Assembly (NCBI RefSeq): GCF_902652985.1
Contig: NC_047028.1
Span: 23,870,001-23,934,000 of the forward strand
DNA from: Pecten maximus
Taxonomy: Eukaryota
Reading direction: 5' to 3'
DNA length: 64,000 nt
The notes beneath the pieces were generated by a model, which saw only the letters and a program-made list of their open reading frames with translations, was not told where the DNA came from and did no database searches. A program made the translations under genes and the position numbers. Below are positions 13,808-50,272 of this stretch, piece after piece. Each line of letters opens with the position of its first letter. The stretch's first letter is position 1.

Positions 13808-14017
13808 ATGGCATTGTTTGCTTTTGTTTGGCCTATCCTCTTGTGTGTAGCGATATTGCCAGAGGGATATTCGACATATAGGATGGGCTTTTTTTGTCCA
13901 CTAGGGAATGGAATATTGGGAGGTAAAAGAGACGTACACACCAAACCTCTCGCTGACAAAATTACCAGCATGAGCGGGATTGCTGAAGAATTGCATCCAT
14001 ATCCAAAAGAGAGTTAA
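13808..14017 (+). CDS. Secreted peptide precursor C1 (69 aa)
   Basis: Acceptor ttctttcag (13803). MALFAFVWPILLCVAILPEG-YSTYRMGFFCPLGNGILG-GKR-DVHTKPLADKITSMSGIAEELHPYPKES*. AATAAA near 14061. Confidence 0.85.
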   Translation: MALFAFVWPILLCVAILPEGYSTYRMGFFCPLGNGILGGKRDVHTKPLADKITSMSGIAEELHPYPKES

Positions 14018-14359
14018 TGATTTTCAACATCACGTGTAACATATGAAAATAACAAAAAGAAATAAACAATTTCATATCTGATAATGATATTTTGTTTGAT
14101 ATGTTTAAATCTTTATAAATTCATCACATGATTACTGCGTTATTGAATGAACACACCGATAGCAAAAGTTTTCTTGTATGCAAAACGTCATTAAACTCTA
14201 AGGAATTTTCTTCACATACTTGCAGATAACCATATGAAGTAGCATTGGACACTGGCTAATGAATCGTAATTCGGGTCCATTTCATATGAATTAAAAAAAA
14301 ACCTTATTCATGTAAACTGTAATGTTACTGATGGTAAATGGGAATCTAACCTTGCAATG

Positions 14360-14699
14360 TTGTCCTTCGGAATGGACGTTGATCCGGGGTCAGGTGTTCG
14401 GTAAGCTCGCCGTTCACGTTAAAGATCCTCTTCTGTATTCGTAGGCTAATTGCTAGCCGCCACAAAGTCTAGTTTTATATAGGTCTAGATTAGGTTTATG
14501 TACGTATTAAGGCAATTCAGTGACACTCCTAAATTACTTCCCACTTTTTTTAGACACACAGATAATAGTCTGCTCCTATCACATAAGATCCTTTGGTGAT
14601 AATAAAATGCGGAATTGCTCCCCAGTTGTGCCCCGAACTACCCCATTCCCCCTCATTGTCCTAGGATCAGTTATAACCGGAACAAGGACGTTAAGCCCC

Positions 14700-14741
<42 letters not shown>

Positions 14742-14742
14742 T
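14360..14742 (+). mobile_element. 5'-truncated SINE-like element (Deu/Nin-domain-like core) with (ATCA)n tail
   Basis: Core tccttcggaatggacgttgatccgggg...cacgttaaagatcct and tail ggacgttaagcccct(tcaa)n at 14701-14740. The unit-2 copy (about 27215-27388) lacks the tail. Family assignment is from recalled motif similarity. Confidence 0.55.
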
Positions 14743-16517
14743 AAACCTCTTCCAATGTAAATAGATAAACATGAACTCTTCATCAAATACTGCTAATCAA
14801 GATCAGGAGAGAATCGACTGCCAAACATTTTCATAATACGAATATAAAAGTTTTGAAACAAGAAGAAAAGAGAATGAAAGAACCTCAGGGTGAAAAAAGA
14901 AATCATGTTTAATGTGTAAGCATCTTCCGCTGTTTTGTCGATACCGCCACGTTGGTTTCCAAGATGCTAACGGGCTTTATTATTTTTTACAACAGGGCCA
15001 AACTATGATCATAAGACTCAAATCTCATGCCCTTGTTCCAACATGATACAATAGCTTTAACAATATCAATTACATGATCCAGTTATTTCGAATATTTTAT
15101 TGATAAAATAAACGCCAAAGTGTTATTTCTCTATCTCTCTCTCTATTTCTCTATATTTCAATTTATTCCTTCCTTGTAGCGAATACTTGACCCTGGTGTT
15201 ATGAAATCAACAACTTTTTAGGAAGCAAATGGTGTTCTTTATATCGAAGAAGAGTCTTTGATTGTACGTTTCTACTTTTCGACGCCTACCTGCAATAGGG
15301 CAGATATGTTTCTATGAAAAACGTTGTATTATGTATGTCTACATAACATATCTGAAGATAATCATTGTGGTTTAAGAAAGCTTTGACAGAGATAATCACA
15401 TGCCTGCCAGGGAAAATCAAACATGATGACGACATACGGGAAAATGTTCATAAACTCTAGATCACATGTGTATAACTAGTAATTGGCATTTCAAAAGATC
15501 AAATGAGCATCTCAAAAGCAACAGAGAACATCAATATTATAATGGAAACGTAATTTGAACTAAAAAAGAAGGACGAAGATCTGAAAACGATTGTACTGTC
15601 ATTTCTTTTCAAACTTCCCCCAATAAAAGGATAGAAAAACTTATAAAAAGACAGTATGAAATCAAAAACAAAGTCAAATATATTTAGGAAATCGAGCTTA
15701 ACGAATCCCCCCTCCCCCGATAACAGTAAATAATGACGATAATGATATAAACAACTTCTTAAAAACACGGTGCTAATCGTATTTTATGAACACATGTCAA
15801 AATTTGGAAAAAATACTCTAACCTTTCAAGTTCTAGTGCACAGTTTCGGTATTTGACCCCAAAACGGAAATTCACTCAAAATGTTATCCTGTCACTAATA
15901 TTTGCCGTTTACATATAAATGGCTGGATAAAGAGGAAAAGGAGATGATTATATCAATGCATCTTGATAAGAATTCAAGAACTGAAATACAGTGCCCTAAA
16001 TCGACCGGAAGCTATATACTAACGATAGAGGCAGAGCACGTTCGAATTTCTTAGGAATGCAATTGATGCAATCGATTTTATTTCATTTTGAATTTAAAAG
16101 AAGATGGCGGATGTCGTCGATGAAGCAGAAGACGCCTACTCTCGCTCCGAACACGACCAAGTGCTCCCTCGTTAAATTAATTTTGAGTTTGAATTATTGT
16201 TCGATTATTATGTTCGCTTTGTTTGTTGTTTTTGTTCTGAAACAAGAAAATGATTAAAAACAGTGAAATATAGCCTATATACGTTGAACGGCAAAATACG
16301 TTACACAAATGTAATTGAAAGACGTTTCTTTCTTTATTCCATACCATTATGAGGGGAACTTTTGTTTAATACACATAATATCATGTAGTCTTTGGAAATT
16401 GTGCAATTAAGTAACTGGAAAGGTTAGCAATTAAAGTTTTTGTAGTCTAATGAGCAAAGTAGTGATAAATCAGGTGATCAAACCAAACCAAATATAATGC
16501 GACTGTATTGAACTTTA

Positions 16518-17690
16518 ACTGCCGTAACAGATATGAATCTTGGATTATATAATAGTATATGTCATAAGCCCATCACATCTACGACTTATAGACTCCTGTC
16601 TATATATCCTATAAGTTAATATTAAAGTAAAATGTAATATTACCTGTACGAATCAATTCATGGTTACGTGAAGTTAAAGGTAGACGGCTGCTGACTCGAA
16701 ACAATTTCCCAAAATAACATGTATGTAATATGTAAATTTATTTATAATAATGGAAATAGAACAGCTTTTCCAGTTGTGATCCAACCGTCTCAAGCTCGTG
16801 ATAACAAACACATTCTAGAGAAGAGCGACTCTTTTGTAAAACAGGACGAATTGTGCGAGGATATCACATATCATGGAAACCATTCCTGTGAACGTAACTT
16901 CATATATGTACTTCAGTTATACTGTTTTGTTTGATGTGTGTGATTTACCTGAATTTCTACCACAATACCCTGTGTTATTCAACTCTCTGACCATCAGTTA
17001 ATCATTACAGCAGTTGATTAACAATCTGTTTATACCACACGTGGTATAAACTATGTACGCATTTTGATTGGCTAACACGGTGAACTTTGACCTAGGCTGC
17101 AATTGTTATTGACGTCATCAATAATCTAATGACGTCACATCACCGGGTCCCGGACGTCACCGGTACACTTTATTTGCATACGCGAAATTATACTTTGCCA
17201 CGTTTCCCTTTGGTTCAAGCCGATATTATTCTGGTAGAAACAGGTCACACGACTCGAAATTGGTGGATGTTGGATATGGAATTTATTTCACACGAGTAAG
17301 TTATTTTTTTAAAGTTACAAAAGACAAGAGCTTTAGCGAGTGTTTCTTTTAAACTTTTAAAAAAAACTTACGAGTGTGAAATAAATTCCATATCCAACAT
17401 CCACTCGTTGTGTAACCTCTATGTATACAAAATAACAACATTTAAACGAAACCTTAATTATAAATAAAACTCAATACAACAAGGACATAATACTAACTTC
17501 GTACATTAACTATATACATGAAGTTTTGCCTTTCTCTAGTGTGTAGCGATATTGTTAGAGTGTTATTTAGCAGAAGATTCAAGACTTGCTGAGATATTGA
17601 TGTATTGCTAGGGATAAAACGTTAGGAATTCAACAGTAACAAAGAGAGACAAGGCTGTCAAGAAATGGTTGGACCTCTGGGGAAATGGTA
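16518..17690 (+). pseudogene. Peptide-precursor pseudogene D1
   Basis: Promoter remnant (TATA 16546-16552, E-box mutated to CAGATA), donor lost, intron interrupted by an insertion, decayed coding remnant at 17523-17690. Confidence 0.7.
16950..17420. mobile_element. Non-autonomous element with long subterminal palindrome (second copy at about 42527-42996)
   Basis: Absent from the homologous intron of B2/B3. Palindrome at 17263-17404 (gtggatgttggatatggaatttatttcacac...gtgtgaaataaattccatatccaacatccac); ends aacctct. Confidence 0.65.
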
Positions 17691-19292: not shown

Positions 19293-19327
19293 ACTGCTGT
19301 ACCAGATGTGAATGTGAGCTTATATAA
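19293..19327 (+). promoter_or_regulatory. Gene A2 core promoter
   Basis: Same E-box/TATA module; donor GT at 19396. Confidence 0.7.
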
Positions 19328-19752: not shown

Positions 19753-19962
19753 ATGGCATTAGTTCCTGTGTTTTTAACTTTCCTCCGGTGTGTAACATTA
19801 CTGTCTGGGGGATGTTTGACAGAAGTTTCAGGACTTGCTGATCTAAAAAGAGAGGACGTTAGTCATAGAGGGATAGTGTATCTCAAACCTCCTGATGCTA
19901 AATCATTAGGAAGATGGCTGCTGAAGTATTTCCTCCAGCATCCGGGAAATGAAGACTTGTAA
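19753..19962 (+). CDS. Peptide precursor A2 with 1-nt frameshift near 19900 (altered C-terminus)
   Basis: gctaaatcattagg versus gctaaaatccttagg in A1. Reads ...PPDAKSLGRWLLKYFLQHPGNEDL*; the restored frame would read AKIIRKMAAEVFPPASGK*. Confidence 0.6.
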   Translation: MALVPVFLTFLRCVTLLSGGCLTEVSGLADLKREDVSHRGIVYLKPPDAKSLGRWLLKYFLQHPGNEDL

Positions 19963-21131: not shown

Positions 21132-21840
21132 TAACAGGTGTCACAAGATTATCACATCTACGACCCTTAGACTGCCGTATGAACGTTTTCCGGAATACAC
21201 CGAGTAAGTAGTTTTATAAATCATACATATACCCTGACGTTAAGGTAAAATACTGAACTCTTATAACATTTTCAATAATTCTGAAAAAAATAATTGATAT
21301 GCTTCGCATTTAAATGTTTTCCCGAAATATATGTAATATGTAATATGATAATACGAACCATTTTTCGAGATACGATCACACCGTCTCGATCTAGATCAGG
21401 ATAACAAAACACATTCTAAAGAAGATTTTATATTGTAAACAGGATCATTTGTGTGAGGATATCAATTTATTATGAAAATGATTCCTATGAACTTAACATC
21501 ATATATATGTACTTCAGTAACACAGTTCTGTTCCACGTGAGTGGTTTACCTTTATGTATCAAAAATAATGACATTCAAACAAAACCGTTACTAAGTAAAC
21601 ATCAATAAAACAAGGGTGTAATAGAAAAATCGTACTTTAACTATGTTATGAGTAAGAAAATAATAAGAAATATATATCTATAGTTTTGTGACCTCATTAA
21701 CCTATTTTCATTTCAAACGAAATATTTATCTATCCTACATATTAGGAAAGTATGGAATGGAATTAATTAATATGTAATTGTAAGCTATATATAATCATAA
21801 GGTGATATCTATGCTTATGTTGATATTTTATTTAGAACAA

Positions 21841-22053
21841 ATGCCATTGGCTGGTGTAGTTTTGCCATTCCTTTTGTGTTTAGCAATATTGTCAGAGGGA
21901 TGTTTGACAGAGGCTTCAGGAATTCCTGATCATCTGCAATACAGTGGGGATGGATTTGGAGGGAAAGAACAAATCAAACCTACCAATGACAAAATCACAA
22001 GGAGGGACAGGGCTGCTGAGGAATTGGTTGCTCCTCCTATCCCAGGGGGATGA
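21841..22053 (+). CDS. Secreted peptide precursor B2 (70 aa)
   Basis: MPLAGVVLPFLLCLAILSEG-CLTEASGIPDHLQYSGDGFGGKEQIKPTNDKIT-RRDR-AAEELVAPPIPG-G*. Confidence 0.85.
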   Translation: MPLAGVVLPFLLCLAILSEGCLTEASGIPDHLQYSGDGFGGKEQIKPTNDKITRRDRAAEELVAPPIPGG

Positions 22054-22157
22054 TGACGTGTAGCATCAAGTGTAGCATATCAAAATAACAAGGAATATAT
22101 GGTTTCCTAACTGATCATGATGTTTTTGTTTGATGTTTTGTGTTAATTCTAAATACT

Positions 22158-22875
22158 ATAAGACTCTTTCATATGCGTATATGTAGGATAGGGATATTCT
22201 AGCCGAGGGGTCACAAAATGAGAATGAGGTGAAACCGGAGCCTTGCCGAGGGTTTTACCACATTTTGTGATCCCGAGGGTGGAATAATATCCCTATCCTA
22301 CATACACACATAATGAAAGAGTCTTTTTCTCTCATATCACTACCAAATGTCTGGCAAAAGTGTCCCTCAGCCATCCAGTTTCTTCATTTCTTTTTTTAAA
22401 TTTCCTTATTTGACGTTTTTACTAAAAATACTGAACTGGTATTCTGAAAGATCATACCCAATTTTGGCAAACTAAGTTCGCACACAAATTTCATTCCATT
22501 GATGGTTAAGTGATGAACGACCAAATAATTCGTCAATTGCCGTAACTTGATCGATCAAACTGTCGACACCCGATAAAGTTCTGTCAACAATACTTTGAAA
22601 AAATCAACGATGAAATGAAATTGATAATTTTACGGAACACACTGTACTTTTTATTGCCCGGTCACATTTTTATAAGATATAACTTAACTGTATGACGTCA
22701 CGACTGCCCATTTATAGTTCAATGCTATTTAAGCGATGTCGATCTCGATCGCTATGACGCGGCGATGTTTCTTAGGCGGTATTATCAAATTCACGGTTTT
22801 AGCAACTTCATGTATGAACCAGCGAACAGTGACTTGATACGAGTATTCGATCTTTTCTGTGACATAGGATTATAT
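22158..22875. mobile_element. Non-autonomous element starting with a ~165-bp palindrome (22160-22325)
   Basis: aagactctttcat..atgtaggatagggatatt..cacaaaatg pairs with cattttgtg..aatatccctatcctacat..atgaaagagtctt. Right boundary is approximate. Confidence 0.5.
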
Positions 22876-23646
22876 GTGTTTAACCGGCTTTCTTGATGGA
22901 ATGACAAAGGTAAGTCCGTCTATAACAATGACCATATTGGAAGGCTAGGATGACAGTTAGTTTTCCTGGTTACTCTACCAGAACATAGTCTCTGTTAAAA
23001 TTAAAATAAATATTTTCTTATATTAACATCGAGGGGCGTCATATTTACCGAATGTTCGTTAATCTAAGAGCCAGAAAATGTCTGAATAATTCCAAATACA
23101 CAGGCTACTGAGTAAGCCTAGTGTAAACCAATGTTCAGGCCACTGTGCTGTCGCAGACGGAACCATTTCATCGCTTGTGGTGTTTTACATTTCCTTTTTT
23201 TTTAAATTTTATTTGTGACTTTAATCAAATTTCCTATCATTGCCCGGTGACTGTGTGTGTTTGCATGTTTAAGTAGTTTAAATGTTTGCACTTGTGCGTT
23301 TAAAACCAACTTATACTAAATAGGCCTAGGTATTGGAAAGGTCAAAACTATATGATACGTATTGTGATACGCTAGAAAAATACATGATACGTATTGTTAA
23401 TACAGGAGTGTCTGCTACTTTTTGTTGAAAGTGTGTAATGTCTTTCAACATCAACGTTGCTTATTCCTTTCTATTTTGTGTGTTTTAGTTTTTTGATCTT
23501 AAAATAGTGAAATATTAAAATTCAGATTGAGCAATTAAAAAACATTTTTTTCAACAAATTTAAAATTAGATATCAATTCCATCTATTTTAATAGATTCTA
23601 TATTATTTAATTTACCACTAAGATGTAGATAATATCCTACTAGGTA

Positions 23647-24525
23647 CAGTAAACCTCACTATATCGCCACCTTCTGGTCTCCGCGATTTTGGCGATATAA
23701 CGAGTTTGGCGGTTTATCTGGTTTGCCGTTCAAACCCGAGTTTGCTGTCCAAACACTATACCTAGTGTTTCCGTAACAACTGCATATTCTGAAAAATCAA
23801 AACCAATTTATTCATATCAAAATATTTCAGCAAATTGTACATGAATATTCTTTGATAACATATAAATATCAAATCTAATTATTTTCCCGAGAATGTCATC
23901 GCAATTTTCATCACATGGTCTACAGTAATCGCAACATGATTTTCAATGCTACCTATTTTAACTGTGTGCATGTTCTACCGGGCGTTTGTCGTTTGTTGTG
24001 CCTTCTACTGACAAACTGGCAAAAGAAACTGTTGAAGAGATAACCATTTCTGAATGTCTGATTCAGCTGTAGAATGCCTGTGTTCTTGAAATTTGACAAC
24101 GGTTCATCATGAACTCGCGCCAGTAATGTTTTTAGATCTGTGTCCGGGGTTTCCGATATTGTTAACATTGCGTCATCACGTGGTACGAGACCACAAAGCA
24201 CTAGCCATAGTTCATTGATTTTGTACACGCGCTCACGGTGTGTAAGCTTATTATCTGTCAGTCGGCAGTCAGTCACGTAACAATAACATATAAACACATG
24301 TCCTTCTGGGCTCAATTTGGCGATAATAACGAGATCAAGATGACGGTTTTTTTTATACCATTTGTTCTCGAAATATGACGGCTGATGGCGGTATGCGAAT
24401 TTGGCGGTAAAACGGATGTATTAGCGTGGGAGGAAATCCGTTCTGAATAAATGAATGGCGTTAAGCGAGTTTGGCGGTAAAACCGGTGGCGATATAACGG
24501 GTCGCGATATAACGGGGTTTTACTG
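23647..24525. mobile_element. Complete pogo/Tigger-like (Tc1/mariner) MITE, 879 bp
   Basis: TA target duplication (23645-23646, 24526-24527); imperfect TIRs CAGTaaacctcactatatcgc and gcgatataacggggttttACTG; no transposase. Confidence 0.8.
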
Positions 24526-26217
24526 TATATGAAACGGCATTTTACGTACAAAATAGTGAAGGAAACTTTCATATTTGATCACTTTTCGATAAATGTTAAC
24601 AATTCCATTTATTCAAGTATATGTTATCTAATTAACTTGTGCATCGCAGAGTAGGCATATTGCCTTGTTTTGTTCAGGGGCTTGTTTGAAGTGCTACACC
24701 ACTTTCGATTTTGTTTTTTCCAGACACACCCCTGGTAAACGTTGGCCTTTCCTCTGTCACCGGCCGCCTATAACTGCTTTCACTTTCATAAGCTGGGTTC
24801 TCTATTCAATTATCCAATAGGATAAACAACACAAAATATAGAAACAATCAATCGAAATGTAAAGTATTCCAAAAGATAGATTCGGAAACGGAGACACCTG
24901 AAAATGTAAAAAGGAAAAAGACCATGTGTTCGGAAAGGGTAAACGCCCTTTTCTTCGTTGAACCAACCGCTATCCAAATCTAGATCAAATCAGTAAGTGA
25001 TATGTTTACACAATCAAAACTTGGGTAACGACAAACAGCCAGTAGACAATCCAATCGAAGGCGTCATCGAACATACTGCAAAATAAACATATCCCATTGA
25101 TAGCGAATTCGATCATACAACTTTTTCATTTTGTCATCAACTTGCGTCTCTCGAAACCTTGTGCTTCAATATTTGCTTTCATCAGCTGCCGACATTTGTA
25201 AAGATTATCGTTTTATTGAAACCAAGTTTGGACATATAACGGTTATATGTGGGAAAACCCAGAAGTTTGTTTACTTGGCACTGGGAAATTAATAAAAGAA
25301 AATTGATATAATTAGTTATAAGCTGCCCCTGTCGGTAACACAGTAAAAGTGGGCATCGTGATGATATGGATATGATTGATGTGTCTTAAAATGGGTATTG
25401 AAGCTTAAAAATACACTTTATATATAAATATCGGGTATCGAATTCCGAGGAACGACGAACTATCATCTATTGTATCCCTATTTCAGACAGCTGAAGAAGA
25501 AATAAGAATTATATACTATTTTTTTGTAGTTAATTGATCATGAATCACGGCAATGGTAATATTAGGAACAAGTCCGCGGATATCAAATCATCTGGTACTT
25601 GTTACCGCCATTTGCTAGGGAACCAGGAACCTTAAGTTATAAAAAACTAATAATAAACAATAGGGAAATCGACATATTCGCGCTACCGTACAGCTTTGTT
25701 GTCAGCTGTCAATGTAGTAATGGTGTCTGTTGTATTTCAATCATTCTTTGATTACATTATTGAATAAATAAGATACGTACAAGGACATTACTACGTGTGA
25801 CCAAATATTATTCATTAAGCCTTCATTTCAGACAGCTGTTGATACATTAACGATGAACTATTTCGGACTTAATTGAACCGATATATGCAAGTAACACACC
25901 TCCTGTTCTTTTAGATATTTGATAATGTTGTACTAAAATTCGAACCAAATTAAGGAAAACTTCACCATATTTGTGACGTGACCATAGATAAATGATCTGA
26001 AACAGCTGTGGAAGCAGTAACGATGACTACATTTGGACTTAATAATAGATATAATCAAAACAGGTAACATGCCACTGTGTTGTTTTAGATGTACGAGGTG
26101 TAATATCAATAACACTAATCCATTTTTGGAAAGCATCACAATATTTATGTTGTGATCAAAGGCAAATTATCGGTTGGTAAATAAAGCTGGATTTTATCAG
26201 ACATGATTTATAGTTTT

Positions 26218-26252
26218 ACTGCCGTACCAGATGTGGATCGGAGCTCATATAA
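26218..26252 (+). promoter_or_regulatory. Gene C2 core promoter
   Basis: Identical module to C1; donor GT at 26325. Confidence 0.7.
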
Positions 26253-26659
26253 TGACAGTTGTCAGAAGCTCACCACATCCACCACGTTTAGACCCCTGAG
26301 CGAACGTTTTCCGGAATACATTGGGTAAGTAGATATTTTCCAAAGCATGTATGACTTATTAACTATTTTTTCACGTTTCCAAACAATGCAGGTATAAGGT
26401 TTACATTTCTTTCAACTTGCATACTTTAGCATGAAAAAAACCGAACGCTAATTCTGAATTTATTATATGTTGCTATGTATCACTTTTATTTTTATTTAAA
26501 ACGTTGTGTTATTCTCCAAGATAAAACGGATAAGAGTTCACAGTTGTGTTTATGTCAGAAGTAAATGAATACAAAAAAAAAGGAAAGTTATAGCGGGCCA
26601 GTTTTAATGTTCAAAAATGTATACCAGACCAATGTTTTGTGTTGTATTCTTTCAGAAAA

Positions 26660-26875
26660 ATGGCATTGTTTGCTTTTGTTTGGCCTATCCTCTTGTGTGT
26701 AGCGATATTGTCAGAGGGATATCCGAGAGATGACATGAACTCTTGTTGGTGTCGTCATCCAGGGAATGGAATGGGAGGAGGTAAAAGAGACGTACACACC
26801 AAACTTCCCGATGACAAAATTACCAGCATGAGCGGGATTGCTGAAGAATTGCTTCCATATCCAAAAGAGAGTTAA
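26660..26875 (+). CDS. Secreted peptide precursor C2 (71 aa)
   Basis: MALFAFVWPILLCVAILSEG-YPRDDMNSCWCRHPGNGMGG-GKR-DVHTKLPDDKITSMSGIAEELLPYPKES*; acceptor AG at 26654-26655. Confidence 0.85.
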   Translation: MALFAFVWPILLCVAILSEGYPRDDMNSCWCRHPGNGMGGGKRDVHTKLPDDKITSMSGIAEELLPYPKES

Positions 26876-29269
26876 TGATTTGTGACATCACGTGTAACAT
26901 ATGAAAATAACAAAAAGAAATAAACAATTTCATGTCTGATAATGATAATTTGTTTGATATGTTTAAATCTTTATAAATTTATCACATGATTACTGCGTTA
27001 TTGAATGAACGCACCGATAGCAAAAGTTGTCTTGTATGCAAAAGCGTCATTAAACTGAAGGAATTTTCTTCACATACTTGCAGATAACCATATGAAGTAG
27101 CATTGGACACTGGCTAATGAATCGTAATTCGGGTTCATTTCATATGAATTAAAAAAAACTGATTCGTTTCAACTGTAATGTTATTGATGGTAAATGGGAA
27201 TCTAACCTCGAATGTTGTCCTTCGGAATGTACGTTGATCCGGGGTCAGGTGTTCGGTAAGCTCGCCGTGCACGTTAAAGATCCTCTTCTGTATTCGTAGG
27301 CTTATTGCTAGCCGCCACAAAGTCTAGTTATATATAGGTCTAGATTAGGTTTATGCACGTATTAAGGCAATTCAGTGACACTCCTAAATCATGGACTCTT
27401 CATCAAGTACTGTTAATCAAGATCGGGGGAAAATCGACGTCCAAACATGTTCGTAATATGAATATAAAAAAATTGAAACAAGAAGAAAAGAGAATGAAAG
27501 AACCTCAGGATGAAAAAAGAAATAATGTTTAATGTGTAAGCATCTTCCGCTATTTTGTCGATACCGCCACGTTGATCTAATTGGTTTCCAAGATGCTAAT
27601 GTGCCTTATTATGTTTTACAACAGGGCCAAACTATGAGCATAAGACTCAAATTGCATTCCCTTGTTCCAACATGATACAATAGCTTTAAAAATAGCAATT
27701 ACATGATCCTGTTATTTCGAATATTTTACTGATAAAATAAACGCCAAAGTGTTATTTCTCTATCTCTCTCTCTATTTCTCTATATTTCAATTTATTCCTT
27801 CCTTGTAGCGAATACTTGACCCTGGTGTTATGAAATCAACAACTTTTTAGGAAGCAAATGGTGTTCTTTATATCGAAGAAGAGTCTTTGATTGTACGTTT
27901 CTACTTTTCGACGCCTACCTGCAATAGGGCAGATATGTTTCCATGAAAAACGTTGTATTATGTATGTCTACATGACATATCTGAAGATAATCATTGTGGT
28001 TTAAGAAAGCCTTGACAGAGATAATCACATGCCTGCAGGGAAAAATCAAACATGATGACGACATACGGGAAAATGTTCATAAACTCTAGATCACATGTGT
28101 ATAACTAGTAATTGGCATTTCAAAAGATCAAATGAGCATCTCAAAAGCAACAGAGAACATCAATATTATAATGGAAACGTAATTTGAACTAAAAAAGAAG
28201 GACGAAGATCTGATAACGATTGTACTGTCATTTCTTTTCAAACTTCCCCCAATAAAAGGATAGAAAAACTTATAAAAAGATAGTAGGAAATCAAAAACAA
28301 AGTCAAATACATTTAGGAAATCGAGCTTAACGAATCCCCCCTCCCCCGATAACAGTAAATAATGACGATAATGATATAAACAACTTCTTAAAAACACGGT
28401 GCTAATCGTATTTTATGAACACATGTTAAAATTTGGAAAAAATACTCTAACCTTTCAAGTTCTAGTGCACGGTTTCGGTATTTGACCCCAAAACGGAAAT
28501 TCACTCAAAATGTTATCCTGTCACTAATATTTGCCGTTTACATATAAATGGCTGGATAAAGAGGAAAAGGAGATGATGATATCAATGCATCTTGATAAAA
28601 ATTCAAGAACTGAAATACAGTGCCCTAAATCGACCGGAAGCTTCATTTGTACAGACTAACGATACAGGCAGGTCACGGTCGAGTTTCTTAGGAATGCAAT
28701 CGATGCAATCGATTTTATTTCATTTTGAATTTAAAAGAAGATGGCGGATGTCGTCGATGAAGCAGAAGACGCCTACTCTCGCTCCGAACACGACCAAGTG
28801 CTCCCTCGTTAAATTAATTTTGAGTTTGAATTATTGTTCGATTATTATGTTCGCTTTGTTTATTGTTTTTGTTCTGAAACAAGAAAAATGATTAAAAACA
28901 GTGAAATATAGCCTATATACGTTGAACGGCAAAATACGTTACACAAATGTAATTGAAAGACGTTTGTCACGTGACTGAGGTAATGGCTACACGCACCTGA
29001 GAGAGCTCCTCGACGAAATGTGGTGTTTCTAATTATTTCTGAGTAACCTACAACGGGAAAGTTGACAAACCACGCACAAAAACATGACTATGTTTTAGTG
29101 TTGTATTCAACTGACAACATATTTGTGATATATGCTGGAAATACGAGTTTAACAACAACGGCCACAGCTGGAATGTGAGTACTATTTCACCTGTACTATC
29201 GTACCTGTATACCTTTGTACGTGTGCATGTTCATCTACACACACACATATTAGCCGTCCGCTATAGCCC

Positions 29270-35837: not shown

Positions 35838-37537
35838 TATCTACTTGCTTGTTTCTACTAATAAGATATCTACCATTTGTATCAAAAGCCGGGTTGTTAG
35901 TGCTATTCTTATGTTTCTTCCTTTCTTTTTTCTCCTTACTGTTTTCTCCCTTTTCAATTATTTTTTTAATAAATCTAAACCTCTTTTTCGAACACCATAA
36001 GTATATCATAAGTATCCTAAAGTATCATTTAAATCATATTACTTTATCACGAAATTACATATATAGACTGCATCGTGTTTCAGTGGTCCTGCCGGCGAAG
36101 TAAGGTTAAGTAATTAGGTATTCCATGGAGTGATCAAAGATGGACAACGTCAGACTGGAGAAAGCTTCTAAGCACAGGATGTGACGAACTCTTAGAAAGT
36201 AGAAGGATCGGAGTGTATGAACAGTAGTGTTTTACTTGCGCCGTCAGGGCCACTGAAACCTCTTGCATGTATAAACGATAAACATTATATCATACTTGGT
36301 GTTCACAATCTATTTCGCTGCTTTACATTTTCCAACCTTTTGTTTAAAAGAAAGTTTAATAATTATGTCACGTGAAACATTGTATATACACATTTGTTAC
36401 GGAAAGGACGTTGGTAAGTTGCATAACTTTTGTCCAATCCATTTGCCATTATGCAATAAAATTGATTTAAACTAAACGTTTCTTTCTATACTCCATACCG
36501 TTATGAGGGGATCTTTTGTTTAATACACATATATCATGTAGTCTTTGGAAATTGTGCAATTAAGTAACTGGAAAGGTTAGCTATTAAAGTTTTTGTAGTC
36601 TAATGAGCAAAGCAGTGATAAAACAGGTGATCAAATCATACCATATAGTGTATCAAACCAAGCCAAATATAATGCGACTGCATTGAACTTTAACTGCCGA
36701 CCAGATATGAATCTTGGATTATATAATAGTATATGTCATAAGCCCATCACATCTACGACTTATAGACTCCTGTCTATATATCCTATAAGTTAATATTAAA
36801 GTAAAATATAATAGTACGTGTACGATTCAATTCATGGTTACGTGAAGTTAAAGGTAGAAGGCTGCTGGCTCGAAACAATTTCCCAAAATAACATGTATGT
36901 AATATGTAAATTTATTGATAATAATGCAAATAGAACAGCTTTTCCAGTTGTGATCCAACCGTCTCAAGCTCGTGATAACAAACACATTCTAGAGAAGAGC
37001 GACTCTTTTGTAAAACAGGACGAATTGTGCGAGGATATCACATATCATGGAAACCATTCCTGTGAACGTAACATCATATATGAGCCGCCGGCTGGCATTT
37101 AGGTCCTTAAGGCATAAAAAATCAAAATTGAGGTTTTGGTATTTTCATAATCTAGAGATAATGGCGGTTAAATTGGTGTAAAAATAGTTTTGGTGTGTCA
37201 ATAACGGACGATTTGACGCTACATTGAATATATGTCGCATTTGGTATGCTAGATGACGTTGGCGTTACTAACGACGTCATTTTACCAGTGCCATTTTTGA
37301 CGTCATTTTTTGCAACGTCATTTATCACAGACAGTTGCATAATGCTTTGCTGTTACAGGTCTTGAATTGAAGACTGTTATTTTGTAATTGTTATTATATC
37401 TATAGTCATTTAAAAAGAAAAAAGTCCTTTTTCAGTTGTCATGATTCATTTATTTACAAGGATAAAATTTGTGATTCACATATCAACTTGAACACAAACA
37501 TGTATCTTGCAATAAACAGGTAACATCCCTTGTAATT

Positions 37538-42086: not shown

Positions 42087-44762
42087 ATACGATTTCTTGA
42101 TGCGTTAGACCTAAACACTCCCATCTGCCATCTTCGTAGCGAATGTAAACAACTACGTAAATACCGGAAGTGTGTTCGGCAGAAAACGGGGAAACCCCAT
42201 TCGTGTCGATATTTTTGTTGAATAAACACTTTTATTTACATTTACCGTTAATGTTATTGAATGGAAAATTAACCGACATATCTAAAGTTTAAGGACAGGT
42301 ATTTAAAGTTCATCTATAACAAAGTATATCAGTTGCATTTTGTGTTTTTGCAACGCAAGTGGGATTCCCGTTTTCGCGCGAAACGGAAATAGAATGGAAA
42401 TAATAACTCTGACGGAATTCCCTTTTTTCTCCGTTTTCATTGGATAGAACTTAAGGACCTAAATGCCAGCCGGCGGCTCATATGTACTTCAGTAATACTG
42501 TTTTGTTTGATGTGTGTAATTTACCTTAATTTCTACCACAATACCCTGTGTTATTCAACTCTCAGACCATCAGTTAATCATTACAGCTGTTGATTAACAA
42601 TCTGTTTATACCACACGTGGTATAAACTCTGTACGCATTTTGATTGGCTAATACGGTGAACTTTGACCTAGGCTGCAATTGTTATTGACGTCATCAATAA
42701 CCTAATGACGTCACATCACCGGGTCCCGGACGTCACCGGTACACTTTATTTGCATACGCGAAATTATACTTTGCCACGTTTCCCTTTGATTCAAGCCGAT
42801 ATTATTCTGGTAGAAACAGGTCACACTACTCGAAATTGTTGGATGTTGGATATGGAATTTATTTCACACGAGTAAGTTATTTTTTAAAAGTTACAAAAGA
42901 CAAGAGCTTTAGCGAGTGTTTCTTGCAACTTTTAAAAAATAACTTACGAGTGTGAAATCAATTCCATATCCAACATCCACTCGTTGTGTAACCTCTATGT
43001 ATACAAAATAACAACATTTAAACAAAACCGTAATTATGAATAAAACTCAATACAACAAGGACATAATACGAACTTCGTACATTAACTATATACATGAAGT
43101 TTTGCCTTTCTCTAGTGTGTAGCGATATTGTTAGAGTGTTATTTGGCAGAAGATTCAAGACTTGCTGAGATATTGATGTAAGGCTAGGGATAAAACGTTA
43201 GGAATTCAACAGTAACAAAGAGAGACAAGGCTGTCAAGAAATGATTGGACCTCTGGGGAAATGGTATATACCGCATTTAATAATGAAAAATGTCTGTGAA
43301 AAAGAAAGCATAATGATTTGTTACTGGACAACTCTATCCAAATAACCATTCTGAAGAAATACAAGCGTGCCGCACGATTTGTCCTGTTATTATTCATTAA
43401 ATAAATATTTTGATCATGTAAGATTGATTCTATTACCAAAAAATGCCTTATGTTGTCTCCTGATTCCTACGAAAATTCGATTGAATTATTTGATATAGCT
43501 CTTGAAGAATATGATTGAAGTCAAATGTTATAATTTTGATTTCAAATAATATACATATTTACATGTAATTTTACAATGTAGATACTACGAACACATAAGG
43601 GGTTGTCCTCAGAATCAGAGCTTGGGTAACGACAAACAACTAGAAGGCAACTTAGCCGACATCGACATACCAAAATAGAATTAGTAATTCCAATTAGAAA
43701 GCCATACAACTTTTTTCAATTCCTCGTCATCAACTTGTATCTTTCGAAACCTGGTGTCATTAATTTTGCTTTCGTAAGCTCCTGACATCTATCTATTGAA
43801 AATAAGTAAGGACATATTCAACGACTACGTAATGGGAAAGTAGAGAGTTTGCTTACTTTGAAATTGATAATTCATAATAAGAAAGTAGATACCATCGGTT
43901 TTAAGCTACTTTTGTTGGCAACACTGTAAAAGTGCGTTCTACGATAACACAGATATGACTTACTTTAAACGGGAATAACAGCTTAAAAATACTATTCATA
44001 CATTAAATACCGGTTTGGAATTCAGAGGAGTGACGGAATATTGTATATTAAGTCTCCTTTTTAGACAGCTAAAGATTATTCATGTTTTAAGTTTTTTAGC
44101 TTATTAATCTTTTTAGAGTCCCTCGCGTCGGAACTTGACATTAATCACTCCCAAAATTTGGAACAAGTTTTTAGATATCAAATCAGCTGTGACATGTTAC
44201 CGTCATATGCTGGTGAAGCGAGGACCTTATTTATTTAGAGATCAACAATCAACAATAAGGAAACCGACATCTTCACGCTACCGTACAGATTTGTTTTAAG
44301 TTGTGTATGTCAATGGTTCTTTGTTTACATTATATGGACATTCCTACAAGTGACCAAATGTTATTCATTTAGCCTTTATTCCATACAGATGGAGAAACAT
44401 ACAACAAAGAATAATTTTTGATATAATTGATCCGTTAAAAGCATGGAACACGCCTTTGTTCTGTTAGATATTTGATTATGAAATGCTTATAGTACAAATC
44501 CATTTTTGGAAAAACATCACCATATCTGCTTTTTGACATAGATAAGTTATTTGAAACAACTGCAGACGCAGTAACTATTACTTAATTTAAAATTAATAGA
44601 TCTTCTAAAAGCAGGTAGCATGTCATAATGATTTACTATATACATTATTGTGTAATATCGATAATACGATTCTATTTTTGGGAAACATTGCCATTTTTGT
44701 GTTGTGATAAAAAAAATCAGCGTATGCTAAAACCGAATTTTAGCAGACATGATCAGTAATTT

Positions 44763-44797
44763 ACTGCTGTACCAGATGTGAATGTGAGCTTATATAA
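44763..44797 (+). promoter_or_regulatory. Gene A3 core promoter
   Basis: E-box + TATATAA; donor GT at 44866. Confidence 0.7.
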
Positions 44798-45222
44798 TAG
44801 GAGTTACTGGTTCACCACATCTACTACTGATAGACGCCAGTGCAGACATTTACGGAATGTACTGGGTAAGTAGCTTTGATTCATTATCTTAATGAGTTGA
44901 CATAACCCATTTTTGGTAAAACGTTCTTCGTGTATTCAAACGATGTAGAAATTTAATACTTAAGTCTACATTTATGTTTTAATTACATTCACGAACATGA
45001 TAATATCTCGAACACTGATTCTCGATCAAGTATACATTGCTATTTGGCAGTTAGTTACTTCTATTTGATGTGGCTTTTATTCATCCTATTCGCCAATGTT
45101 ACACAGATTGAAAATAACAGATACGTTTGTGTAAGAAAATAATAGATACAAAAGTATTTATAGTTGGACAGGATTCGTGTTCAAAACCCGATACCAGAAC
45201 ATTTTTATATTCTTCCAGGAAA

Positions 45223-45423
45223 ATGGCATTAGTTCCTGTGTTTTTTACTTTCCTCCGGTGTTTAGCAATACTGTCTGGGGAAGGTTTGACAGAAGTTTCA
45301 GGACTTGCTGATCTAAAAAGAGAGGACGTTAGTCATAGAGGGATAGTGTATCTCAAACTTCCCGATGCTAAAATCCTTCGGAAGAGGGCTGCTGAAGTAT
45401 TTCCTTCACCACCCGGGAAGTGA
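45223..45423 (+). CDS. Secreted peptide precursor A3 (66 aa)
   Basis: MALVPVFFTFLRCLAILSGEGLTEVSGLADL-KR-EDVSHRGIVYLKLPDAKIL-RKR-AAEVFPSPP-GK*. Confidence 0.8.
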   Translation: MALVPVFFTFLRCLAILSGEGLTEVSGLADLKREDVSHRGIVYLKLPDAKILRKRAAEVFPSPPGK

Positions 45424-46640
45424 AGACTTGTAACAAAAGGAATCAATGATGTCATAACTGAAAATGTTTTATTGTATATATCGAAACATATCTGATTTGG
45501 TTATATGATTGCTGTGTTATTGTTATTGTTTAAACACACCCATTACAAAATGTTCGCATGCATGTGTGTAATATCACATATACTGACATCATTAAAGGCT
45601 AATAAATTGATTCACATACTTCCAGACATTTGCAAAATTCAAAAGAAATGTTCAAGTTAGATAAAGTAGAGCCAAAATGAACTAAACCACATAACTCTAG
45701 GACTCGTCAGTGATGCTAGTTGTCTCAAATGAACATAGGACGCGACCAAAAGTGCCATCAAAATTTTAAAGAGAGGCGAAGCAAATTTCAATATTTGAAT
45801 TTTAACGAACATTAATAAAATGGGAATGAATTAAAACTAGACAAACAACCAGGCTACTATAAAATGTGGATATAAATGTGTAGACGAAACCTTATATGTA
45901 TCTCAAAATTAATAAGATATAGGCAAAATATAAAACCTAATGAATATCTGGCAGCCTTAACAATCACCTGACCAGCGCTATCTAAACACACCCACGAGCA
46001 AACTTCCTGTTTTGATACCATGTTTTATGTTACAATATTAAATCACATTAGTCGCTATGATAACGGGAATATCATGTAGCCCGCATTTGCCCTAGCTTTT
46101 TATGGCGGGTGCCGTCCATGAAGTAGTAGGCCCTTACTCTCTTTCTCTCTCTACTCCTGATCGTATTGCCCTTGTACTTTTGCTAATCTATATATTTGTT
46201 TATATTTTGTCGTTGTTCAATCGATTTTGAATCATGGTTTGGTTTTGATGTCGGTATTCTTTGTTGCTTCTTCTCTGCGTCTCCTGCAGTAAGGAATTTT
46301 GTTTTTTGTTTGTTTTTTAACAGGAAAATTGATTCACGTTAAAAGGCAAACTATTCTATACAAATATAATTGAAAGTCATTTTTCTAGTCTATACCGTTA
46401 TGAAGGAAAACTATTTAAATGTATATATAAAAAGAGGTGTTCGCAATTAGTGTAATTGTACAACTAGGAATATAAACAATTACAAAAGTTGTGGTCTGAC
46501 GATCAAAGCATAAGTATAGCGGATAACAAAATATTGATTGCTTGATATTTTGGAAACAAATTCTATATGTATATGGCGATCAAAGACAAATAATTGTATG
46601 TTGATCCAAACTGAAAATAAGGCGACGATCATGAACTTTT

Positions 46641-46675
46641 ACGGCCGTACCAGATGTGAATCTGGGATTATATAA
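46641..46675 (+). promoter_or_regulatory. Gene B3 core promoter
   Basis: E-box + TATATAA; donor GT at 46748. Confidence 0.7.
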
Positions 46676-47393
46676 TAACAGGTGTCACAAGATTATCACA
46701 TCTACGACCCTTAGACTGCCGTATGAACGTTTTCCGGAATACACCGAGTAAGTAGTTTTATATATCATACATATACCCTGACGTTAAGGTAAAATACGGA
46801 TCTCTTATAACATTTTCAATAATTCTGAAAAAATAATTGATATGCTTCGCAGGTAAATGTTTTCCCGAAATATATGTAATATGTAAGGTCCGTTATGATA
46901 ATACAAATATAACCGGTTTTCGAGATACGATCGAACCGTCTCGATCTAGATCAGGATAACAAAACACATTCTAAAGAAGATTTTATATTGTAAACAGGAT
47001 CATTTGTGCGAGGATATCAATTTATTATGAAAATGATTCCTATGAACTTAACATCATATATATGTACTTCAGTAACACAGTTCTGTTCCACGTGAGTGGT
47101 TTACCTTTATGTATCAAAAATAATGACATTCAAACAAAACCGTTACTAAGTAAACATCAATAAAACAAGGGTGTAATAGAAAAATCGTACTTTAACTATG
47201 TAATGGGTAAGAAAATAATAAGAAATATATATCTATAGTTTTGTGACCTCATTAACCTATTTTCATTTCAAACGAAATATTTATCTATCCTACATATTAG
47301 GAAAGTATGGAATGGAATTAATTAATATGTAATTGTAAGCTATATATAATCATAAGGTGATATCTATTCTTATGTTGATATTTTTTAGAACAA

Positions 47394-47606
47394 ATGCCAT
47401 TGGCTGCTGTTGTTTTGCCATTCCTTTTGTGCATAGCAATATTGTCAGAGGGATGTTTGACAGAGGCTTCAGGAATTGCTGATCATCTGCAATACAGTGG
47501 GGATGGATTTGGAGGGAAAGAACAAATCAAACCTACCAATCACAATATCACAAGGAGGGACAGGGCTGCTGAGGAATTGGTTGCTCCTCCTATCCCAGGG
47601 GGATGA
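47394..47606 (+). CDS. Secreted peptide precursor B3 (70 aa)
   Basis: MPLAAVVLPFLLCIAILSEG-CLTEASGIADHLQYSGDGFGGKEQIKPTNHNIT-RRDR-AAEELVAPPIPG-G*. Confidence 0.85.
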   Translation: MPLAAVVLPFLLCIAILSEGCLTEASGIADHLQYSGDGFGGKEQIKPTNHNITRRDRAAEELVAPPIPGG

Positions 47607-47687
47607 TGTCGTGTAGCATCAAGTGTAGCATATCAAAATAACAAGAAATATATGGTTTCCTAACTGATCATGATGTTTTTTGTGTTT

Positions 47688-48187
47688 NNNNNNNNNNNNN
47701 NNNNNNNNNNNNNNNNNNNNNNNNNNNNNNNNNNNNNNNNNNNNNNNNNNNNNNNNNNNNNNNNNNNNNNNNNNNNNNNNNNNNNNNNNNNNNNNNNNNN
47801 NNNNNNNNNNNNNNNNNNNNNNNNNNNNNNNNNNNNNNNNNNNNNNNNNNNNNNNNNNNNNNNNNNNNNNNNNNNNNNNNNNNNNNNNNNNNNNNNNNNN
47901 NNNNNNNNNNNNNNNNNNNNNNNNNNNNNNNNNNNNNNNNNNNNNNNNNNNNNNNNNNNNNNNNNNNNNNNNNNNNNNNNNNNNNNNNNNNNNNNNNNNN
48001 NNNNNNNNNNNNNNNNNNNNNNNNNNNNNNNNNNNNNNNNNNNNNNNNNNNNNNNNNNNNNNNNNNNNNNNNNNNNNNNNNNNNNNNNNNNNNNNNNNNN
48101 NNNNNNNNNNNNNNNNNNNNNNNNNNNNNNNNNNNNNNNNNNNNNNNNNNNNNNNNNNNNNNNNNNNNNNNNNNNNNNNNNNNNNNN
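47688..48187. other. Assembly gap (500 N)
   Basis: Run of N; the round length suggests an arbitrary scaffolding gap. Confidence 0.99.
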
Positions 48188-48394
48188 AGCCGTTAGGACA
48201 GACACACCGGAACGATCCCCGGGTGTTGAGACAGCTAGCGTTGTGTTGACACATATTCAGCGTACACTCGTTAATATCTACGTCACAGAGGTCCCCTGTC
48301 CAGCCTCGGTCGCACGAGCAGTAGAAGGATCCAGGAATGTTGACACAATTTCCACCATTTTGACAGAGGCCAGTCTGTCTACACTCATTCACAT
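48188..48394 (-). CDS. EGF-repeat protein, internal exon (two Ca-binding EGF domains, cut by gap)
   Basis: DVNECRQTGLCQNGGNCVNIPGSFYCSCDRGWTGDLCDVDINECTLNMCQHNASCLNTRGSFRCVCPNG; acceptor ggacag at 48395. Confidence 0.9.
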
Positions 48395-48448
48395 CTGTCC
48401 AATCACAACGGTTAAAAATGTGACATAGTTAAATTTATTTCAATGGTG

Positions 48449-48553
48449 GACGGGACTTTAGGGTATAATTGACGGGACTAAAGAAGATAATTGACGGGAC
48501 TAAGGGGGATAATTGACGGGACTAGATGGGATAATTGACGGGACTAAGGGGGG
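48449..48553. repeat. 22-bp intronic minisatellite (~5 copies, gacgggactaagggggataatt)
   Basis: Directly visible. Confidence 0.85.
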
Positions 48554-48914
48554 AGGGTTAATTCTTTCAAAGTAGCAAAGAACTAAAAAGGGAAGCCATT
48601 TAATGTAGTTCACAACGACTCCAAAATATATATCAATGTAGTTCAAACTAATCTTAATTATAGCCTAAATATGTTTCATTATAGCTGATAACGACTGTCA
48701 AAATGAATGTAGATGCAGTATGTTTAGAACGTCTGCCTCAGCATTTCAAATGGATGTCTGTCAAATGATATGATAGTGACCGCGCCACGATGTGCTGATC
48801 AAGACAAGTAAGTTGCAATCAAGATGAATGTAAGTGAGACAACATTAGGTAGTATATGACCGACGCATTCCGTAAAAAGTGTATCAGTTCACTCTAGATA
48901 TGTAAACCTCTTAC

Positions 48915-49031
48915 CAAATTCACAGTTGGTGCCGATCCTGCCGGGTACACACATACAGATATAGGAGCCAGGTGTATTGACGCATGTACCGTCATACATA
49001 CATGGACTCATGCTCCTGCACTCGTTTTTGT
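48915..49031 (-). CDS. EGF-repeat protein, internal exon (cbEGF)
   Basis: 117-nt phase-1/1 exon DKNECRSMSPCMYDGTCVNTPGSYICMCVPGRIGTNCEF with AG/GT boundaries. Confidence 0.9.
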
Positions 49032-49288
49032 CTGAAATAAATATGAAAAACAGAAATTCATTGATAGACAAGAAAATGAGTCATTTGAAAACTCGATAGG
49101 ATTAATTGTGCTAGATGTCGAAGGCGATATCATACATGTTGATTTTTAACACTACGATGAAGATCATACATTAAAATGAAAAAAAAAATCACGGATTTTG
49201 TTATTGCAAACATTGGCATAAGAAAGGATTTACGGCCCATTTGTTGACAACATAAAGCAAAGATTACTTATAAGAAGGAATCACTCAC

Positions 49289-49402
49289 CGTCTTGACAAT
49301 GTTTGCCTGTCCAGCCCATAGGACACTTGCAGTAGTAAGATCCGGGGGTGTTCTCACATACACCTCCATTCTGACACATGTTCACCTCACACTCGTCCAC
49401 GT
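49289..49402 (-). CDS. EGF-repeat protein, internal exon (cbEGF)
   Basis: 114-nt phase-1/1 exon [38 protein letters not shown]. Confidence 0.9.
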
Positions 49403-49633
49403 CTTCAATAAGCAAAGTAGAAGTTAAACAGATGTAACATTTCAACAATTTCATATTCAGATTCATTAAATCGCAGTTCTACAAATTATAATATTTCCAT
49501 CGATGTCTACTTCTGAAGTTGATTTAATCTTACATATACTGAAGAACAGGAATTCTTAAATACCCATTAAGTCGAAGTAATTCAAGAAACTAAACAAAGA
49601 ACAATAATACCTTGGAAGTTGATAGCTACTCAC

Positions 49634-49753
49634 CGTATTCGCAGAAAGCGCCTTTCCATCCTGGAGGACAGATACAATTGCTCTTGCCTTGCTGTGTGGT
49701 CTGTATACAGGTGGAACCATGCTGACATCTATTCAGCAGGCATGGTATCATAG
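49634..49753 (-). CDS. EGF-repeat protein, internal exon (not in ORF track)
   Basis: 120-nt phase-1/1 exon MIPCLLNRCQHGSTCIQTTQQGKSNCICPPGWKGAFCEY; acceptor ccacag, donor gtgagt. Notch/fibropellin-like architecture, but the gene cannot be named. Confidence 0.88.
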
Positions 49754-50059
49754 CTGTGGACGAGTAAGGACATGGAAATACATTTATGTGTCATTGAATA
49801 AAAGACTTAAAACCAAAACTTATTTATAGTAGTGAAAAAGTACAAAAATGTCTAAGAAAGACACCTCAATTATCAATATATCAACACTTTGTCATACACC
49901 TGGACATATTTTCTTGTCAAGTATAAATGCAGGATGATGGGGTCATTTGATTACGCTTTTTATAGTTTTTAAACATATCAAACAAATTATCATTATCAGA
50001 TATGAAATTGTTTATTTCTTTTTGTTATTTTCATATGTTACACGTGATGTCACAAATCA

Positions 50060-50272
50060 TTAACTCTCTTTTGGAGATTGAGGCAATTCTTCAGCAATCC
50101 CGCTCATGCTGGTAATTTTGTCAGCGAGAGGTTTGGTGTGTACGTCTCTTTTACGTCCCATTTCATTCCCTGGATGACAACACCACTGGTGGTTCAGGTC
50201 ATCTATCGAACATCCCTCTGACAATATCGCTACACACAAGAGGATAGGCCAAACAAAAGCAAACAATGCCAT
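50060..50272 (-). CDS. Secreted peptide precursor C3 (70 aa)
   Basis: MALFAFVWPILLCVAILSEG-CSIDDLNHQWCCHPGNEM-GRKR-DVHTKPLADKITSMSGIAEELPQSPKES*. Exon-1 donor at 50548; promoter 50621-50655. Confidence 0.85.
   Translation of the reverse strand: MALFAFVWPILLCVAILSEGCSIDDLNHQWCCHPGNEMGRKRDVHTKPLADKITSMSGIAEELPQSPKES

Follow-up and report, generated by a model that had tools for sequence, protein, structure and literature searches.

Diversifying selection on a hypervariable core in clustered small prepropeptide genes of the scallop Pecten maximus

How can neighbouring copies of one gene keep nearly identical promoters, introns and signal peptides while the peptides that they encode differ sharply? 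The question is raised by three genes, here called C1, C2 and C3, in a 64,000-nucleotide (nt) stretch of the scallop Pecten maximus (contig NC_047028.1, positions 23,870,001 to 23,934,000; hereafter the window, to which all plain coordinates refer), which is AT-rich at ~34% GC. A preliminary description of the locus had proposed diversifying selection on an amidated ligand of 18-20 amino acids (aa). Our analysis supports the part of this proposal that concerns selection: the variable core of the C genes is under positive diversifying selection, both between copies and among individuals, and codon likelihoods, a parametric bootstrap, non-coding baselines, control genes in the same repeats and the variants of C2 agree on this point.

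The three genes have a common plan, in which a TATA box is followed by a short non-coding exon 1 ending in ...ACATTGG, a GT..AG intron (277, 331 and 272 nt in C1, C2 and C3) and exon 2. Every intron ends 4 nt before the ATG, so that exon 2 starts 4 nt 5' of it and holds the entire coding sequence as one uninterrupted open reading frame (ORF; 69, 71 and 70 aa, respectively). Exon 2 encodes a prepropeptide of ~70 aa made of a 20-aa signal, the core, a basic site and a 28-aa acidic tail, and an AATAAA lies ~45 nt past the stop codons. The signal has a 15-residue hydrophobic run and then S-E-G, a fit to the (-3,-1) rule that was judged by eye. Directly behind it sits the core, 18-20 aa long in C1-C3 and 17-20 aa across the intact C genes. 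The features of the three genes, including their untranslated regions (UTRs), are as follows.

13450..13455 (+), C1 TATA box (TATAAT), in a promoter block near-identical across C1-C4; the box is kept in all subfamilies
13480..13526 (+), C1 exon 1, 5'UTR; 3' end from homology to the C2 splice joint, 5' end inferred ~30 nt past the TATA box
13527..13803 (+), C1 intron, 277 nt, GT..AG, homologous to the C2 intron seen spliced
13808..14017 (+), C1 coding sequence: signal 13808-13867, core 13868-13921, G-KR 13922-13930, acidic tail 13931-14014, stop 14015-14017; AATAAA at 14061-14066
26248..26253 (+), C2 TATA box (TATAAT)
26278..26324 (+), C2 exon 1, 5'UTR; 3' end fixed by spliced contigs, 5' end inferred
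26325..26655 (+), C2 intron, 331 nt, GT..AG, removed in contigs of two independent studies
26660..26875 (+), C2 coding sequence: signal 26660-26719, core 26720-26779, G-KR 26780-26788, tail 26789-26872
26919-26924 (+), C2 AATAAA
50620..50625 (-), C3 TATA-like box (TATAGT, one A>G change)
50549..50595 (-), C3 exon 1, 5'UTR; 5' end inferred
50277..50548 (-), C3 intron, 272 nt; 5' half C1-like, 3' half C2/C4-like, with the mosaic breakpoint within
50060..50272 (-), C3 coding sequence: signal 50213-50272, core 50159-50212, G-RKR 50147-50158, tail 50063-50146, stop 50060-50062

Most of what the preliminary description had read from the letters held when the copies were compared region by region. 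Its three mature peptide strings are found exactly, at 13868-13921 (+) in C1, 26720-26779 (+) in C2 and 50159-50212 (-) in C3, and the claim of near-identical exon 1, intron, signal and 3'UTR around sharply differing cores is borne out. Among C1-C3 there are 1-3 differences in 122 nt of exon 1, 0-1 in 60 nt of signal and 1-5 in 89 nt of proximal 3'UTR; introns diverge by 4.4-7.9%, plus a 54-nt insertion in C2, and the distal upstream region by 9-11%, while the cores diverge by 20-35%. A recount of C2 against C3 returns the same nine codon differences and one codon indel in the core, six differences in the tail and none in the signal, with no synonymous pair among them; the 1.2 "synonymous" steps that the Nei-Gojobori method (NG86) assigns to this comparison come solely from path-averaging of two triple-hit codons. 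The indels among C1-C3 are all in frame, and the counts of one, two and three Cys in C1, C2 and C3 were correct.

The claim that a Gly always precedes the basic site fared less well, since it holds in C1-C3 and fails in the other copies. A search of the genome (918 Mb, 3,983 contigs) found six C-type copies, all on one contig. C4, at L036:2572-2781 (-), is intact, lies ~97 kb upstream of the window and corresponds to RefSeq locus LOC117343017; four Cys are present in its core, whose end reads M-RRKR and has no Gly. C5 (L040:8319-8528) has no promoter, no exon 1 and hardly any intron, most of which is gone, and GNQR replaces GGKR at its processing site. C6 (L033:8687-8932) lacks exon-1 homology, has GDKR at the site and is frameshifted by a one-base insertion just before the stop. 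C1-C4 keep intact ORFs, splice sites and TATA boxes. Cores of C1 to C6 hold 1, 2, 3, 4, 1 and 1 Cys, at positions that are not conserved.

An internal control is provided by the genes with which C1-C3 share their repeats, as the window is laid out in repeated A-B-C modules:

4245..4445 (+, module 1), 19753-19962 and 45223-45423, A-type genes, internal control
21841-22053 and 47394-47606, B-type genes, internal control

Between modules, A copies and B copies differ by 0-1 of the 69 nt that follow the signal, as against 17-21 nt in the equivalent part of the C genes. The signals show the opposite pattern, with 3-5 nt of difference between A or B copies and 0-1 nt between C copies. The A copy at 19753 carries a frameshifted tail.

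Any comparison of core with flank must take account of traffic between the copies. Where C1 and C2/C4 have different letters, C3 sides with C1 between the proximal promoter and the middle of the intron, and then with C2/C4 in exon 2 and on into the 3'UTR (p = 0.0005, maximum chi-square with permutation). C4 sides with C2 in nearly all flanks; the exceptions are the tail and a single upstream block, where it is C3-like (p = 0.004). These mosaic flanks lead us to conclude that the paralogues exchange segments, to judge from the sequences by gene conversion or unequal crossing-over. Such exchange accounts for introns and UTRs that are less diverged than the distal flank, and also for an apparently fast tail in the C2-C4 pair, which we considered as a mark of selection and rejected because C4 carries a C3-like tail segment. 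It follows as well that the flanks underestimate the age of the copies, and for this reason the most diverged flank and tests internal to the codons were used in addition to the intron.

The codon data comprised six paralogues and four contig-derived alleles over 20-24 codons. Under the Goldman-Yang model (GY94), the ratio of non-synonymous to synonymous rates (dN/dS, omega) is 5.5-6.7 in the core, and omega = 1 is rejected (likelihood-ratio test, LRT, p 1e-3 to 1.4e-4); omega is 0.35 in the signal and ~0.7 in the tail, neither of which differs from 1. The core estimate ranged over 3.1-8.6 (p 0.018-0.0003) under alternative alignments and subsets, namely gap-free columns, the processing site dropped, an automatic MAFFT alignment and the four intact genes alone. 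In a parametric bootstrap at omega = 1, none of 160 replicates combined omega > 1 with an LRT as high as the observed one, the top null omega being 3.4. Baselines from outside the code tell the same story: in each of the seven informative pairs, the dN of the core is 2-22 fold higher than the divergence of any non-coding class, a difference that is significant in six pairs even with the most diverged flank as baseline. For C2 and C4, core dN is 0.20, compared with 0.009 for the intron and 0.048 for the distal flank. The check that the preliminary description had asked for, dN/dS with the intron as baseline, thus gives a core omega above 1 and a core dN above the intron, and its inference of diversifying selection stands. 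Two of its supporting arguments do not. That no difference between C2 and C3 is silent falls short of significance when taken alone (Fisher p 0.07-0.26), because the core has only ~12 synonymous sites; pairwise NG86 Fisher tests of dN against dS were underpowered at this number of sites, none being significant (p >= 0.05), and were replaced by the likelihood tests and non-coding baselines. Nor can the six tail changes be counted as selection, given a tail omega of ~0.7 (not significant) and a C2-C4 tail excess that is the C3-like segment in C4.

Further evidence comes from contigs of four public sequencing runs from four studies, which were aligned over 21500-27400. Contigs of two of them, X1 and X12, contain a splice joint 26323->26655 (cut +1) that skips 331 nt with GT..AG ends; all four runs have contigs over exon 2 of C2 and none has any over the intron, and the transcript contig is colinear with the genome between 26655 and 26940. 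These data show that C2 is transcribed, and that it is spliced in the predicted way. A further accession, L043 (SRR5586479), was rejected as expression evidence as it is unspliced genomic sequence. No contig of the four runs covers the B-type gene at 21841-22053, a hole that proves nothing, and look-ups of the exact products of C1, C2 and C3 gave no match, which is uninformative with transcript contigs this short.

The same contigs reveal where C2 varies. Relative to the reference there are eight variant sites, all within 26747-26783 and all non-synonymous (W30R, R32H, H33R, H33Q, G35W, M38I, G41R and K42Q), and none in the signal, tail or 3'UTR of C2 (P = 1.5e-4 from position only). The contigs of each study show a C2 core with 2-4 substitutions joined to an exact C2-specific tail; since they carry C2's own tail and the reference holds no other C2-like copy, we take them to be alleles or non-reference copies. 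One of the changes, K42Q at 26783 (AAA>CAA), turns KR into QR in two of the four C2 transcripts (X1 and X12), and C5 has the identical change. The shared K-to-Q replacement may reflect either recurrent mutation or a short conversion tract, and would impair convertase cleavage.

We consider it fairly probable that C1-C4 are two-exon prepropeptide genes in which the core diversifies faster than neutral while the flanks are homogenised, and that they supply a small secreted peptide directed at a changing partner. The processing, amidation, dimer formation and ligand role that we infer for the C peptides would run along a familiar route. Signal peptidase would cut after ...SEG, a proprotein convertase would cut at KR, RKR or RRKR with trimming by a carboxypeptidase, and PAM would amidate the core where a Gly is exposed, so that the core would be released as an extracellular peptide of 17-20 residues. 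By analogy, a changing partner outside the cell would then drive its sequence to diversify. The likeliest setting for this would be host defence or microbe recognition, as in the myticalins and myticins of mussels and as the commonest such setting in bivalves; the main alternative setting would be gamete or conspecific recognition.

Several points weigh against this account. The codon data set is small, and recombination and multi-nucleotide changes can inflate omega. The tail is near-neutral, and two of the six copies, C5 and C6, have decayed. Evidence from the runs consists of assembled contigs, not raw reads, and RNA status is proven for X1 and X12 only; among C1-C4, expression was seen for C2 only. 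With C4 lacking the Gly and QR in two of four C2 transcripts, a single amidated 18-20-mer is not an assured product. Typical antimicrobial peptides are cationic, which the neutral to acidic C cores are not. Lastly, an X1 contig extends over DNA upstream of the TATA box, as taken up below.

The most serious competitor, which we nevertheless regard as unlikely, does without positive selection: the C genes would be old duplicates whose flanks are homogenised by gene conversion, and the core, by now too diverged for conversion, would be drifting under relaxed constraint toward the state of a pseudogene. It draws on the demonstrated exchange of segments, the two decayed copies, the variable processing site, a tail omega no different from 1 and the non-significant pairwise tests within the codons. 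Against it, omega = 1 is rejected for the core by both the LRT and the bootstrap, core indels are without exception in frame, four copies retain intact ORFs, splice sites and TATA boxes, and C2 is transcribed and spliced. Moreover, variation within C2 amounts to eight non-synonymous and no synonymous changes, and no variant falls in its tail and 3'UTR, which drift would not have spared.

A second alternative concerns the start site, and we judge it distinctly unlikely. In the RefSeq annotation, the C4 protein (P0001, 111 aa) begins at the ATG in exon 1, which puts 41 extra residues before the signal. If the true product of the C genes were a 111-aa protein of this type, begun at the upstream ATG (26214 in C2), the hydrophobic stretch would serve as a signal-anchor and the core would be displayed on the membrane. 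The upstream ORF is indeed open and in frame in C1-C4, and the X1 contig mentioned above (26107-26281; 175 nt, depth 5) lies upstream of the TATA box. In subfamilies A and B, however, a stop occurs within 10-15 codons of the upstream ATG even though the DNA is conserved there, and the TATATAAT (TATA) box kept in all subfamilies falls inside the supposed coding stretch. In addition, an X12 transcript fragment begins at 26286, behind adapter sequence and ~35 nt past the TATA box, and start-codon context, with A at -3 and G at +4, favours the downstream ATG. On these grounds we think that the RefSeq C4 model is over-extended and its start probably wrong. As for the X1 contig, it could represent upstream transcription, unspliced background or DNA carry-over; the same run also has intergenic contigs of similar depth ~1 kb upstream (25250-25627), which suggests background.

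The layout of the precursors also invites a third alternative, namely that the C genes are classical neuropeptide or hormone precursors, each paralogue encoding a different amidated ligand with its own receptor. Prohormones of the GnRH, AKH and corazonin type place the peptide right behind the signal and then have G-K-R and an associated peptide, and the C precursors share this order, which we treat as a weak lead. Look-alikes in the ESM Atlas were all prohormones of this kind, although every score was below 0.9 and the match is a lead only, and the other subfamilies of the family have several dibasic sites and C-terminal G-K ends. We consider this reading very unlikely nonetheless. Peptides of the GnRH, AKH and corazonin type are strongly conserved, and neuropeptides in general are conserved both within a species and from paralogue to paralogue, whereas the C peptide is the least conserved part of its precursor, varies among individuals and sometimes loses its processing site, and there were no matches to Pfam neuropeptide families. 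Finally, that the core differences are consensus or assembly errors, a natural worry in a repetitive, gap-containing region of a long-read assembly, is hardly credible and largely refuted: contigs of four independent studies reproduce the C2 core bar 2-4 substitutions each and its tail exactly, C4 equals an independent RefSeq protein, and the differences all keep the reading frame and have no counterpart in the A- and B-type genes that share the repeats.

Returning to the reading of the core as a selected, secreted peptide, we find that its closest parallel, by analogy of gene and precursor, is the myticalin family. Myticalins are antimicrobial peptides of the Mytilus gill whose precursors have a conserved signal (consensus MKGxxLLLLTIxxALCMIxECEG), a hypervariable central peptide, K-R often after an amidation Gly and an acidic C-terminal extension; the peptides are linear, with an isoelectric point above 11, more than 10% Arg and no Cys, and are reported to be restricted to Mytiloida (PMC5577615, PMC12294457). 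Their genes comprise three exons, with a 5'UTR-only exon 1, a ~300 bp intron just before the ATG and a second, phase-1 intron in the C-terminal extension, and they form tandem subfamily clusters with individual variation and pseudogenes (PMC5577615, PMC12294457). The C genes are alike in the order of the precursor, in the 5'UTR-only exon 1 and short intron before the ATG (272-331 nt), and in their tandem subfamilies, individual variation and pseudogenes. They fall outside the myticalin family, however, in having one coding exon instead of two and no phase-1 intron in the extension, in cores that hold 1-4 Cys and are neutral to acidic, and in their scallop host. No homology of the C precursors to myticalins was detected by profile searches of 5.8e9 and 1.84e9 proteins, which included no direct profile-profile comparison. 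Another mussel family, MgCRP-I of Mytilus galloprovincialis, has six invariant Cys that form three disulfides (PMC4558851). It resembles the C genes in evolutionary pattern, and differs from them in that C cores are much shorter, with 1-4 non-conserved Cys.

More distant animals offer comparable cases. In the conotoxin superfamilies of Conus, the signal and non-coding parts are conserved, the short Cys-containing mature peptide is accelerated non-synonymously and G-K/R amidation is frequent. Conotoxins, however, are expressed in the venom gland, keep one Cys framework within a superfamily and have a pro-region that separates the toxin from the signal, whereas C cores vary in Cys number and lie directly behind the signal; scallops also lack a venom apparatus, and there is no sequence similarity between conotoxins and the C genes. 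The preprodermaseptin-type precursors of frog skin likewise combine a conserved signal with a hypervariable mature peptide under diversifying selection that is frequently amidated. Their order is signal, acidic pro-piece and C-terminal cationic helix, unlike the C genes, which have the variable peptide towards the N-terminus and the acidic piece at the C-terminus. What is unusual about the C genes is that their Cys number varies and that the control inside the locus is so clean.

The C genes belong to a larger family of at least 26 ORFs within ~255 kb of one chromosome-scale contig, a count that is a lower bound as about half of the cluster outside the window was covered. The family consensus runs from the signal through YLTExSG, a variable stretch, TKPxxDKIT and RRxR to AAEELxxPPxxGK. 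Public protein models exist for two of the at least 26 ORFs, both uncharacterised Pecten maximus proteins, and for none of C1-C3; the small single-coding-exon peptide genes of the cluster are mostly unannotated. A Pfam scan of six family members gave zero matches. Scallop sequences (P0001-P0004) were all that came back when 5.8e9 proteins were searched with single sequences and with profiles, and when HMMER was run exhaustively against 1.84e9 representatives; no paper naming the two annotated loci was found in the literature. One of the returned sequences, P0004, is on a contig labelled "invertebrate metagenome" and was considered as a second lineage; this was rejected, because the contig is 97.8% identical to window positions 42544-47044 and is thus host DNA. 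The family is new and unnamed and has been seen only in scallop DNA; its evolutionary pattern is well known, above all from cone snails, frogs and mussels.

Two variants of the family plan deserve mention. An alternative tail (…NLPMTKS…GLLRNWL…) is common to ORFs at 52840-53025 (-) and L041:1109-1312 (-) and to P0004, and was found also in DNA of another sample; judged by its letters, it may be the usual TKP..DKIT..AAEEL tail in another frame, representing a recurrent or inherited frameshift lineage. In P0002 (LOC117342956; L008:1251-1571 (-)), a module "..ELQK..GGFSGRAGIAQPIDDKIARSRRAAD" is repeated ~2.5 times, as a small polyprotein version.

Two further features of the window bear on the setting of the C genes:

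47688..48187 (no strand), assembly gap of 500 N between a B-type gene and the gene with EGF repeats
10022..10989 (+), orphan copy of the distal upstream region of the C genes, 84.5% identical to 25002-25968, with no gene attached

The gap starts 82 nt past the stop of the B-type gene at 47394-47606, ends 1,872 nt from the C3 stop codon and touches no promoter, exon or intron of a C gene. It bears only on the distance and orientation of C3 relative to C1 and C2, which may reflect an inversion beside the third A-B module or a scaffolding choice. In another sample, a public contig (L044) extends through the corresponding position. Between the gap and C3 lie calcium-binding EGF-like repeat exons of an unrelated gene (48188-49751, -), the leftmost of which enters the gap. 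C3 stands in a different 3' context from C1 and C2, as its homology to their 3' flank stops at ~49968, ~215 nt from the nearest EGF-like exon. Elsewhere in the window, relics of the family at 5648-5766, 16514-16598 and 36689-36772 resemble exon 1 and promoter, with the TATA box present and no coding exon nearby; together with the orphan upstream copy they indicate that partial duplication and decay have occurred more than once. A LINE-type retroelement (32374-35018, +) lies between repeat modules 2 and 3, with an endonuclease/exonuclease/phosphatase domain in one ORF and a reverse transcriptase (RVT_1, E = 2e-35) in the next, and coincides with strong negative GC skew at 32-36 kb.

Taken as a whole, the locus amounts to an unusually clean natural experiment, in which sister genes A, B and C occupy the same duplicated modules and only the 60-nt core of C runs away. 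Because the flanks are homogenised around that one core, it is a good system for separating selection, gene conversion and mutational hot spots. The cluster also exemplifies how small-peptide gene clusters escape annotation, and the C peptides are short enough for direct synthesis and testing. A bolder and, in our estimation, improbable extension is that each scallop has its own repertoire of small, mostly amidated Cys peptides, so that allelic hypervariability, exchange between paralogues and 1-4 Cys together make up a polymorphic recognition system. If this were true, the range of Cys numbers would allow mixed disulfide-linked dimers and hence combinatorial diversity, and the C genes would serve the recognition of self versus non-self, of gametes, the animal being a broadcast spawner, or of its own microbiota, rather than being a conventional antimicrobial or neuropeptide family.

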